A stretch of 64,000 nucleotides of DNA. Origin: Oikopleura dioica. Its lineage: Eukaryota > Animalia > Chordata. The notes below the pieces were generated by a model, which was not told where the DNA came from, searched no databases, and saw only the letters and a list, made by a program, of their open reading frames with translations. The stretch covers positions 10,726,001 through 10,790,000 of the forward strand of contig OU015568.1 in assembly GCA_907165135.1 (NCBI GenBank), in the 5' to 3' direction. The translations under genes were made by a program, and so were the position numbers. Positions 19,449 to 22,926 of the stretch are shown piece after piece. Within the stretch, counting starts at the first letter, position 1. Each line of letters begins with the position of its first letter.

Positions 19449-21257
19449 CTAGTTTGAGCTTCGGAAGTTATTTTCTACTTCGTAGAGTTTTTTCTTCAGT
19501 GATTTTAGCTGATTCTGAATAGCGCGGGACTTGGCCGCACTCTCCTTGAAGTTCTGTAGGACTTCTATGTCATTCAGGCCGCCGATGCTCATTTTGTAAA
19601 GCTGGCCTTCGAGCTGGTCGCATCTCTCTTTCAATTTTTTTATTTCATTGCGGTAGCCTTCATTTTCTAGCCCTCGTCGCTGCTCAAGAGATGAGAATCG
19701 CTGAATAGGATCGTTAAGATGATTCATTCGTATAAACATACGACATTCAGATGTTCATAAAAAGTTCAAATATTACCTTTGTAGTCAATTCCAGCTTATC
19801 GATAAGTTTGGCAGACTTTGTCTGGTACATATTCTGATCGCGAAGAGCTTGGTCCTTCACTTTTGAAACTTCTTCTTCGGCAGTTATGCACTGTTCTCGA
19901 TACATATCAGATAAATGCACCGCTTGCTCGAGCCGTTCTTTCAGTGCCTCATTTTCTATTTTCAGCTTTTTGACGACTAAAGTCAAGGATGAGAACCAGA
20001 TGCGTCTGATGAATCTTACCGGAAGGATCGATCGCTGGCTTGGAGAGCACGTCGTAGTTTTTGCGCATATGAGCTGGAACAGCAAGGAGTTTATCGTGTC
20101 CACTTGGCTTGTACGTTGGTGATTTTTGATCTTGCTCATCTAAAAAACATAAGGAAACGCATTTAGATGAAATCTTACAGATTCGATCGTGAGCTTTGTC
20201 TAGTTGCTGAAGAAGTTTATCTTTCTCTTGAAGCCATGAACGGTCCTTTTCTCGCTGTGCTTTTCGCGCCTAGAGCCCTTGTAAAACGCTAAATTAAGAT
20301 TCGAAGATTACCTCAAGGAAGTCCTTTGTCGTATCTTTCAGAAGTTCTTGAGTTTTCCTCAACCTTGCTTCTAGCTGCTCCGTTCTATCCGCTTCTCGAG
20401 CTCGATGTGTTTCATGTTCTTCGATCATAATGCGTCTGTCCTCCATCAACTGGCTCGTCTGCTCATTCGAAAGCTTTATGTGCTCCTCTAGCTGCGCTCT
20501 CAGTGCCTCAACTTGGAGCGCAAGAATCTGTTTGTCGTCGCGCAGCCTCTCTTCGCTCGGGCCAGAGTTCTTCTTGCTTATTTTTATCTCGCTTGGTTTG
20601 AACTTTGATGGAGCTCTTACAACACCGTCACCCTTTAGTGTCGGCTTAGGAGGCGGGTTTTCGCGAGGCGTTGAGCAAAGACTACCATCACCAGATTCTT
20701 GGGGGTACTTCATTTCTGCATTATGTTCCTTGATCACCACTAGAAAAGCGATTCGCATGCGAACTTGAAAAAGAAAACTACCTATTCCGGGAGGTTCTTT
20801 ATGAAAATAAGAACATTCTGCAATGCTCGGCCCCGCGATATTCAACAAATGCTGCATTGTTTTTCTATCTTCGAGTTCTCGTATTTTCAGCTTGTCATTT
20901 TCTGCGTGAAGTCTCAAGTTGCTCTCTCGCTCCTTGAGAAGGAAGACTTGTATGTCTGAAAGTGCTTTCTGCAAGTCGTTGATTTCTTTCTCGCGTTGGC
21001 GGATTGTTCGTTCTAGCAGAGCTTCTTGCTGACAGTGTTTTACAAAGTTGTCTAGCTTTCCGGACATTGTATCATATTCGATCTCTAGCACAATTTTAGT
21101 AAAAAAATGAAACAAAGTTTGTACCTAAATCTTCAACTTTATGTCTGTAGAATTCAAGCAATTGTCTTGAAGGTCGAAGAGCAGCAAGTCGCTCTTCTAC
21201 TGTTGGAAGTCCATCGTCTAATTCTAGGGACACTTCTGCTACCGGTTCGATTTCCAT
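19449..21257 (-). CDS. CCDC77: Coiled-coil domain-containing protein 77
   Basis: LPTVEERLAALRPSRQLLEFYRHK; REKEINDLQKALSDIQVFLLKERESNLRLHAENDKLKIRELEDRK; HLSDMYREQCITAEEE; GLENEGYRNEIKKLK. Confidence 0.9.
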
Positions 21258-21354
21258 ACTAAGAGATTGAAATGAAGAATGGTTGTTAATCGATAAATCC
21301 ATGATTCAAGTATTGCAGCTGTGTGAAAGGGTGAAGAGATTGTGAAGAAGCTTG

Positions 21355-22926
21355 TCAGGCTCGGTTCATAATTATGAAACCGGCGAAAACACCAGTGATA
21401 GAGAACATTGATAAATGAGTAGAGAACGTCATTGGGTACGGAGCGGTGATCAAGTAAACCCACGAAATGCCTAAGACCACAGATTAATTCTCTTCTTTTT
21501 TGTAAAGTGCTTACCTAAAATGGCGCCGATAGCTGGGACAAACCAACGAGTAATATCATCAAAGAAGTCCTCCTCGTCCAATTGCGGCGAATGCTGTCCC
21601 GTTCGAGGATGAGCACTCGTTCCTGCATTATTATTGCTTTCTTCAGGACTCGGCTCTGGAGGTAGCGTCTTATAAAAGCCGTGCATTGTGTCTCCATCTT
21701 TAACGCCGATTTTTGACATTTTTGCCTTGTCGTCCTTTAGCGTGTGGGAGAAGGTCCTCTCCTCTTAGGCATAGTAACTGGCTCGAATGGCGGACAAAGT
21801 CCCCGGAGAAGTAGTGCAGTGGTAGCACACCGGTTCATGAACACGGAGGTCCCTGGTTCGACCCCAGGCTTCTTCAATACTTTTCACTCGCCTTTGCCTG
21901 ATCCTACAAACTGGTGAAGACAGTGGGTTGTCTAGGTAGCCAAAACAAACCCTAAGCTGAGATTGACAAAGGTTCACTCAGTAGCTCAGGAGAAGCTGAA
22001 GGTTGGGAGGGTTGGTAGGCTTGTAACGGTTGGGGACCGTGGCACCAGACAAAGAACCAAAACCCAAGGCGGCATATGTAAGACGAGTTGTTAGAGCAGT
22101 TACTAGGGAGTTGTGGGAGAAGGTCCTCTCCTCTTAGGCATAGTAACTGGCTCGAATGGCGGACAAAGTCCCCGGAGAAGTAGTGCAGTGGTAGCACACC
22201 GGTTCATGAACACGGAGGTCCCTGGTTCGACCCCAGGCTTCTTCAATACTTTTCACTCGCCTTTGCCTGATCCTACAAGCGGCATGCCGCCAAAAATGAG
22301 ACAGAGACGTCTACGCTCTGTGGAGTTTTCAATGTTCTTTCCTAAATTATTCCCGCTTTACAGAAACGCCGGTAAATTTATTCATACGTTTGAAATCACC
22401 GAGACTCTGGCTCGGCCGAAATCTGCATTGAATCTCGCTCTCATCTAGAAATCGTATTTTTGTCGTTAGTTCCGGCTCTTCCAGATCTCCTTCATCGAAT
22501 AATTCCTCAGCTACTGACGAGGGCGACCTTTGGTCAGTGCTAGAATTTCCGCCATTTGCCGAGCTGCTTGCTCCCTGAGAAGATGGAGGCGCACTGGAAT
22601 TTCCATCAGAATTAACTCGCCGACGAAGCCCTTCGGGACTTCTTCGCAGTGAGGATGACTGCTCGTTTCTTTGCGCCGATGAAGAGTCGTGCACGATATT
22701 AAATGTTCCGCGACCGGGGATGTTGAATTGGCCCTCTAATTCATCTGGTGTGGACACTACAGAGGATTGGACATGATATTTCATCGGATAAATCGGATAA
22801 TTTACCTTCAGTACTTCTCCAAGCAAAAACAACAACGGCGCAAATTAAGCTGGCAACTATAGCCGGCAAGAATTTCTCACCATACTCTCCATAAAACCCT
22901 TCAAAATTCCCATACAGCGCCTCCAT
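21355..22926 (-). CDS. TMUB1: Transmembrane and ubiquitin-like domain protein (TMUB1/2-like), interrupted by a TRIM in this haplotype
   Basis: N-terminal TM segment ..LICAVVVFAWRST; UBL domain TTKIRFLDESE..PSQSLGDFKR..LCLIFGGMP|LKDDKAKMSKIGVKDGDTMHGF, rejoined after removing the insertion; two C-terminal TM segments. Paralog assignment is uncertain. Confidence 0.8.
21743..21908 (+). repeat. 5' LTR (166 bp)
   Basis: TG...CA termini. Identical by eye to 22112-22277. Confidence 0.95.
21805..21876 (+). ncRNA. tRNA-like Pol III unit in 5' LTR (degenerate anticodon arm)
   Basis: Acceptor GGAGAAG/CTTCTTC, D arm GTGC-AGTGGTA-GCAC and T arm CCTGG-TTCGACC-CCAGG all pair. The anticodon stem CCGGT/CACGG has two mismatches. 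TTTT follows a few nt downstream. Confidence 0.8.
21912..21927 (+). other. Primer-binding site complementary to a tRNA-Leu-type 3' end
   Basis: TGGTGAAGACAGTGGG, 3 nt after the 5' LTR. Its reverse complement CCCACTGTCTTCACCA has a CCA end and the CCCAC T-stem typical of tRNA-Leu. Confidence 0.7.
22112..22277 (+). repeat. 3' LTR (166 bp)
   Basis: Direct repeat of 21743-21908, followed by the AGCG TSD. Confidence 0.95.
22174..22245 (+). ncRNA. tRNA-like Pol III unit in 3' LTR
   Basis: Second copy of 21805-21876. Confidence 0.8.

Follow-up and report, generated by a model that had tools for sequence, protein, structure and literature searches.

The window analysed here is a 64,000-nt stretch of the Oikopleura dioica genome (assembly GCA_907165135.1, contig OU015568.1; chromosome 1 of the Okinawa lineage), and positions given below without a prefix refer to it. 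Its minus strand carries a four-exon gene whose third exon is interrupted by a terminal-repeat retrotransposon in miniature (TRIM) lying antisense to the gene. Read from the sequence, all three introns of the gene are of the GT-AG class, measure 49, 46 and 44 nt, and end in TAG. Exon 1 (22806-22926), with the ATG at 22926, encodes an N-terminal transmembrane helix, and exon 2 (22388-22756) encodes a disordered linker and the start of a ubiquitin-like (UBL) domain, consisting of strands β1-β2 and the beginning of the helix. Exon 3 as a whole runs from 22341 to 21515. Its part upstream of the insertion (22278-22341) ends in ...RRRLCLIFGGMP and the first base of a Leu codon, and its part downstream (21515-21742) encodes the remainder of the UBL, a linker and the start of a second helix. 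Exon 4 (21355-21470) supplies the end of the second helix, a third helix and the stop codon TGA at 21357-21355.

Homology searches were conducted exon by exon and with natural uninterrupted sequences. Two ORFs on metagenome contigs were recovered by a word search that used the part of exon 3 lying beyond the insertion. When the uninterrupted exon 3 of contig L018 (described below) was used as the query for a HMMER search of the whole library, the matches included full-length proteins of 289-290 aa (P0003, P0013, P0018 and P0019), as well as more distant proteins with about 40% identity. P0003 and P0013 derive from sister lineages; the contigs that encode them (971-2123 nt; Logan SRR1185391 and JGI metatranscriptomes) carry no introns, indicating that they originate from RNA. 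Their exon junctions match the four-exon model of the window exactly. Furthermore, the orthologous protein of 289-290 aa encoded by these spliced RNA contigs reads without interruption across the insertion site.

The initial annotation had named the host gene TMUB, and this identification is supported by a family profile, by the ESM Atlas and by the predicted fold. A profile built from the appendicularian family matches TMUB2 of Frankliniella (E 1e-7) and TMUB1 of Anabrus (E 6e-7), and the top 12 matches in the ESM Atlas are all TMUB2 clusters (0.95). The AlphaFold model of P0003 places a β-grasp at residues 127-200 (pLDDT 84-90) with strand β4 at 174-176, an N-terminal helix at 16-38 and C-terminal helices at 230-260 and 267-288; hydropathy is concordant with three transmembrane helices. 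A Foldseek search of the PDB with this model yielded leading matches that are all ubiquitin or UBL structures (target TM about 0.85). The Pfam ubiquitin profile matches residues 132-195 of P0003 (E 1.3e-4), and the orthologues score 22.1-25.2 bits, the latter value belonging to P0008. Because these scores fall just below the gathering threshold of 25.4, the UBL assignment rests on fold and profile evidence jointly. Pfam matched none of the window's exon pieces when these were searched singly, as half-domains are too short; its matches came from the uninterrupted exon of the empty-site contig and from the orthologues. Taken together, sequence and structure prediction support the view that the host gene is TMUB, with one N-terminal helix, a UBL and two C-terminal helices. 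Neither a paralogue nor a second allele of TMUB was found in the assembly. The only other genome match, a weak one at C1:10515626, encodes a ubiquilin-like UBL and was rejected as a TMUB paralogue.

The TRIM itself occupies positions 21743-22277 of the plus strand. It is complete, 535 bp long, and has TG..CA ends. A repeat search of the window reported direct repeats at 21743-21909 and 22112-22278 with 100% identity, and the limits of the true LTR were set at 166 bp, from TG to CA, once the remaining genomic copies had been compared. The 5' LTR thereby covers 21743-21908 and the 3' LTR 22112-22277, with mismatches at 0 of 166 positions. Between them lies an internal region of 203 bp (21909-22111) that holds a PBS-like 9-mer, TGGTGAAGA, at 21912-21920 and the purine run AGGGAG at 22105-22110. 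No gag or pol coding capacity was detected in the element: the internal region is non-coding, and the only ORFs are spurious ones that run through the LTRs and have no protein homology. Direct terminal repeats of 166 bp (the usual range is about 100-300 bp), a total length below about 1 kb and TG..CA ends are the size and structure of a TRIM. The element is flanked by two copies of the target-site duplication AGCG, at 21739-21742 on the left and 22278-22281 on the right. The earlier claim that a TRIM sits in a coding exon is borne out by these features together with its position in exon 3.

This family has at least 11 full-length loci and three solo LTRs in the genome, and one tandem array with four LTRs is among its loci. 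Perfect 4-bp target duplications, with different sequences, are present at 13 of the 14 loci, and such 4-bp duplications are the mark of integrase-mediated insertion. The copy at G000:C1:8826133 is 100% identical to the TRIM in the window over its whole length. An autonomous partner was not found in the genome, where the PBS region is present only in the family's own copies. A match on L042 was rejected as a partner since it is a chance match adjoining a simple repeat. Scans of JGI metagenomes with the LTR end and the tRNA-like core gave no match, which is a weak test because the near-identical contigs came from ENA. Among the members of the family, only the copy at 21743-22277 lies clearly in a verified coding exon; those on L003, L004 and L012 span moderate ORFs of unverified status. 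The possibility that the family prefers exons or acts as an introner was rejected; it is small (about 14 loci) and not enriched in genes.

Other loci of the family show some structural variety. The tandem array (L004:771-2037; G000:C1:2724384-2725650) is composed of four LTRs and three internal regions, one of which has a 12-bp deletion, and a single GGTC duplication flanks the array. A solo LTR with a GTAC duplication (L014:1046-1927; G000:C5:16057306) is located within a gag-like ORF that has CCHC zinc knuckles. An identical solo-LTR insertion with the same flanks occurs 18.5 kb away (L015; C5:16038752), which indicates that the host retroelement was duplicated after the insertion of the solo LTR.

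Each LTR contains a 72-nt tRNA-like unit on the plus strand (21805-21876 in the 5' LTR and 22174-22245 in the 3' LTR), which is called by ARAGORN and matches the Rfam tRNA model with 50.5 bits (E 1e-9; gathering score 29). In the 5' LTR, an A box is located at 21812-21822 and a B box at 21855-21865, and a TTTT run (21881-21884) lies 5 nt 3' of the unit; the unit in the 3' LTR was placed by the same two programs and by the motif positions. The anticodon stem is degenerate in these units. The tRNA-like sequence folds no better than its shuffles (z = -0.7), which is consistent with our view that this part is probably non-functional as a tRNA. Elsewhere on the chromosome, a 74-nt tRNA gene (L017:1500-1573; G000:C1:10853572) is 80% identical to the LTR unit and may be related to the source tRNA. 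ARAGORN labels it tRNA-Ser(TGA) although it is without a long variable arm.

The PBS-like 9-mer begins 3 nt past the 5' LTR, and all 9 nt are complementary to the 3' end of the tRNA-like unit in the LTR itself (21868-21876) when CCA is added to it. A search of the genome for a tRNA fitting the 16-nt PBS-like stretch gave counts about equal to those of the control, with no tRNA at the best matches. The PPT candidate before the 3' LTR is the short AGGGAG run. Given the complementarity, the TRIM family may self-prime reverse transcription by means of the tRNA-like RNA of its LTR, the alternative being a chance match of 9 nt.

The initial annotation had proposed a comparison with other individuals, and empty-site alleles are indeed present in four marine metagenome contigs: L018, L019 (ENA), L020 (Tara Oceans) and L021 (JGI). 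The first three are 97.4-98.7% identical to the window, and L021, with about 70% identity, represents another lineage. The alignments break exactly at positions 22278 and 21742, with an overlap of 4 bases in every contig that corresponds to a single copy of the target. In these contigs exon 3 is uninterrupted and has a stop-free translation, ...GGMPLKDDKAKM..., exactly the reading that had been predicted for the window upon removal of the element and one copy of the duplication. Specifically, the Pfam ubiquitin match spans the insertion site in this uninterrupted exon (E 4.6e-4), and UBL domains account for all ten of its leading sequence matches in the PDB. Since 13 of the 14 copies have a perfect 4-bp duplication, and since the breaks in the empty-site alignments are base-exact at the element ends, the insertion is not a product of chance. 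Contig L021 has a one-base frame shift in the exon 3 linker relative to the conserved C-terminal frame (L021:940-1075), which is probably a low-coverage assembly error.

A recent event had been proposed on the basis of the identical LTRs, and the empty alleles lead to the same conclusion. The flanks of the insertion differ from the empty alleles by 1.5-2.6%, whereas the LTRs are identical, which makes the insertion far more recent than the divergence of the haplotypes. In coding sequence, the window departs from the empty alleles by 14 synonymous and 3 non-synonymous codon changes, with no other stop or frameshift. This pattern indicates that the gene was constrained until the insertion and was not decaying. 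The absence of LTR differences, the identical copy elsewhere in the genome, the flank divergence and the codon differences all argue for a recent insertion, and the TRIM allele is most likely young, polymorphic and not fixed. One of the 3 non-synonymous differences lies in exon 4 at 21400-21402 (codon 23 of the piece 21358-21468), where the window encodes Ser and the empty-site contigs and all orthologues encode Phe, at a conserved position in the third transmembrane helix.

The TRIM lies within the Leu codon that follows Pro175 (...IFGGMP), in strand β4 of the P0003 model and after β1-β2-α1-β3. In tblastn searches, orthologues align to ...IFGGMPL at 22277 and resume at L176 at 21740, with residues 175 and 176 of P0003 and P0013 mapping to 22280 and 21740. 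The minus-strand frame passes through the insertion as ...GGMPLVGSGKGE, reading LVGSGKGE beyond the junction and then a premature TGA in the antisense 3' LTR (22253-22255), 8 codons past the junction. The initial annotation had given this frame as KNIENSTERRRLCLIFGGMPLVGSGKGE*, and it reads as stated, with the stop at 22255-22253. Past the TRIM, the frame resumes as LKDDKAKMSKIGVKDGDTMHGFYK.... A product of about 192 aa would be expected. It would retain the membrane anchor at the N terminus, the linker and some two thirds of the UBL, but neither the last UBL strands nor the two C-terminal transmembrane helices. The claim that the insertion cuts the UBL and removes these helices holds.

The following course of events fits these features best. 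A non-autonomous TRIM, presumably mobilised in trans by an autonomous LTR element that supplied reverse transcriptase and integrase, entered exon 3 of TMUB, a single-copy gene on chromosome 1 in the Okinawa lineage, at a staggered cut of 4 bp. A readthrough mRNA would reach the TGA eight codons into the LTR, and because an intron lies downstream of this stop, the transcript would probably be a target of nonsense-mediated decay. Given the truncated product and probable nonsense-mediated decay, the resulting allele would most likely be null. We consider it probable, with good though not complete confidence, that this whole account is correct and that a trans-mobilised TRIM of the Helenus type (see below) gave rise to a young, non-fixed and most likely null TMUB allele.

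The insertion would be harmless if the antisense TRIM were spliced out as a new intron to yield a near-normal TMUB protein. On the gene strand, the TRIM begins with TGTAGGA and ends in the pyrimidine-rich CCTTCTCCCACA. Judged from sequence only, a hypothetical GT-AG intron of 542 nt (21735-22276, minus strand) can be drawn with the donor CTT/GTAGGA at 22276-22275, whose GT starts at the second base of the antisense LTR, and the acceptor AAG at 21736-21735, which holds the first AG beyond the pyrimidine-rich end and is preceded by the pyrimidine run CCTTCTCCCACAC. Its excision would remove the whole TRIM and one Lys codon in frame, giving MPL-DDK. Two alternative acceptors 17-20 nt inside the LTR end (21763-21762 and 21760-21759) would leave 24 or 21 nt and would be in frame at any insertion phase. 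Larvacean spliceosomes tolerate odd introns, and Henriet et al. reportedly found in 2019 that appendicularians handle many unusual and transposon-derived introns. However, the real TMUB introns are 44-49 nt long and end in TAG, whereas the candidate is about ten times longer and has AAG as its acceptor, which puts A at -3. The internal acceptors are without a pyrimidine tract, in-frame pairs of this kind are fairly frequent by chance, and no other TRIM copy examined has cleanly spliceable flanks. In the collections searched, neither an annotated protein nor a transcript or other RNA from the lineage of the window was found. Overall, a harmless insertion rescued by splicing appears unlikely, and we are slightly more doubtful still that the antisense TRIM is spliced from TMUB pre-mRNA with the donor T/GTAGGA supplied by the element. 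If this were to happen, the locus would show an LTR-type element in the act of becoming a new chordate intron.

Two further explanations are an assembly artefact and an old pseudogene. A chimeric long read or an error in haplotype merging could have created the junctions, such that no animal carries a TRIM at this position. The Okinawa assembly OKI2018_I69 (PMC8008620) represents one male with a heterozygosity of about 3.6%, and HaploMerger2 was used to merge the haplotypes. Noisy Nanopore reads and merged haplotypes (PMC8008620), as well as the 100% identity of the TRIM to another copy, could be taken to favour such an artefact. But the junctions are base-exact at the TG..CA ends, and AGCG is duplicated here and single in the empty alleles. 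Exact junctions combined with a 4-bp duplication are the signature of an integrase rather than of misassembly, and an artefact is very improbable. It is even harder to credit that TMUB was lost long ago and that the TRIM is a late arrival in dead DNA. An old, fixed pseudogene would account for the interrupted frame and for the single F-to-S change at the conserved third-helix position of the window allele, but contigs with 98% identity carry an intact gene and an empty site. The excess of synonymous codon differences, the lack of other stops or frameshifts and the identity of the LTRs likewise oppose great age.

TMUB had been proposed to head an operon with CCDC77 and PSAP downstream, and spliced polycistronic RNA from a sister lineage supports its position as the first gene. 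A JGI metatranscriptome contig from that lineage (L026:118-2121) carries both a spliced TMUB ORF and a spliced CCDC77-like ORF about 100 nt apart, and must therefore represent a polycistronic RNA. In the window, the TMUB stop is separated from the next gene by 52 nt to its first ATG and by 97 nt to its second. A second sister-lineage contig, L025, has its poly(A) just beyond the first ATG of the next ORF, which suggests that the second ATG (MEIE..., window 21257; region 21257-21302) is probably the real start of that gene. In the RNA contigs, the 5' UTRs of TMUB run colinear with the genome, as would fit a first gene with its own promoter. The proposed identities of the downstream genes fared unequally: Pfam detects a saposin B domain in the third gene (E 7e-7), in agreement with the claim, and the second is CCDC77-like by an Atlas lead only (0.98, low recognition).

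Neither AATAAA nor ATTAAA occurs in the TRIM on the gene strand, and in operons the downstream cistrons undergo separate maturation. Considering both points, we would expect the insertion to exert little polarity and to have little effect on the downstream genes of the putative operon.

A young transposon insertion that makes a loss-of-function allele is an ordinary type of event, and both the element and the mutation belong to known kinds; here the event is cleanly documented. It indicates ongoing transposition of a Helenus-type TRIM in the genome of O. dioica, which is very compact and has few mobile elements. In the Okinawa reference assembly, the animal's single TMUB gene is represented by a disrupted allele, and caution is needed in annotation so that a truncated TMUB model is not taken as the gene of the species. 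The allele might also provide a naturally occurring knock-out of a UBL protein of the ER membrane, already at hand in a laboratory culture. Finally, the locus offers a clean test case both for the rescue of exonic insertions by the larvacean spliceosome and for the effect on downstream genes when the leading gene of an operon acquires a stop.

The host protein resembles TMUB1 and TMUB2 of other animals in its architecture of helix, UBL and two helices, and the family profile reaches named members of both. Unlike these, the Oikopleura protein is very divergent, with about 22-24% identity to the insect proteins, and is encoded by a single gene. The insertion also invites comparison with transposon-derived introns, namely introners and the non-canonical introns of appendicularians that derive from MITEs. 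Common to these systems are a mobile element in a coding exon and a tolerant spliceosome, and the antisense end of the TRIM supplies a GT. In contrast to those introns, any splicing of the TRIM is a reading of its sequence, and its family is small and not enriched in genes.

Among elements of similar build, the Cassandra TRIMs of plants have a Pol III promoter and terminator within each LTR, as predicted for the Oikopleura TRIM, and likewise form tandem arrays with multiple LTRs. However, the Pol III unit of Cassandra is derived from 5S rRNA and its target duplication is 5 bp, whereas the putative Pol III unit of the Oikopleura TRIM is derived from a tRNA, its duplication is 4 bp and its host is an animal. 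The closest counterpart is Helenus (group TRIMp3), the name given by Kojima 2024 (PMC10886601) to TRIMs with tRNA-derived sequence in their LTRs; animal members have 4-bp target duplications, and no tunicate is mentioned in that paper (PMC10886601). The Oikopleura PBS-like 9-mer sets the family apart in that it matches the family's own tRNA-like unit plus CCA, with no genomic tRNA gene found for it. The two are alike in having two short LTRs, between which the Oikopleura element has a PBS-like sequence and a candidate PPT, no coding sequence, a tRNA-like sequence with A and B boxes in each LTR that probably is not a working tRNA, 4-bp target duplications and solo LTRs. On these sequence features, we assign the TRIM to the Helenus or TRIMp3 type, for which Oikopleura would constitute a new host lineage.
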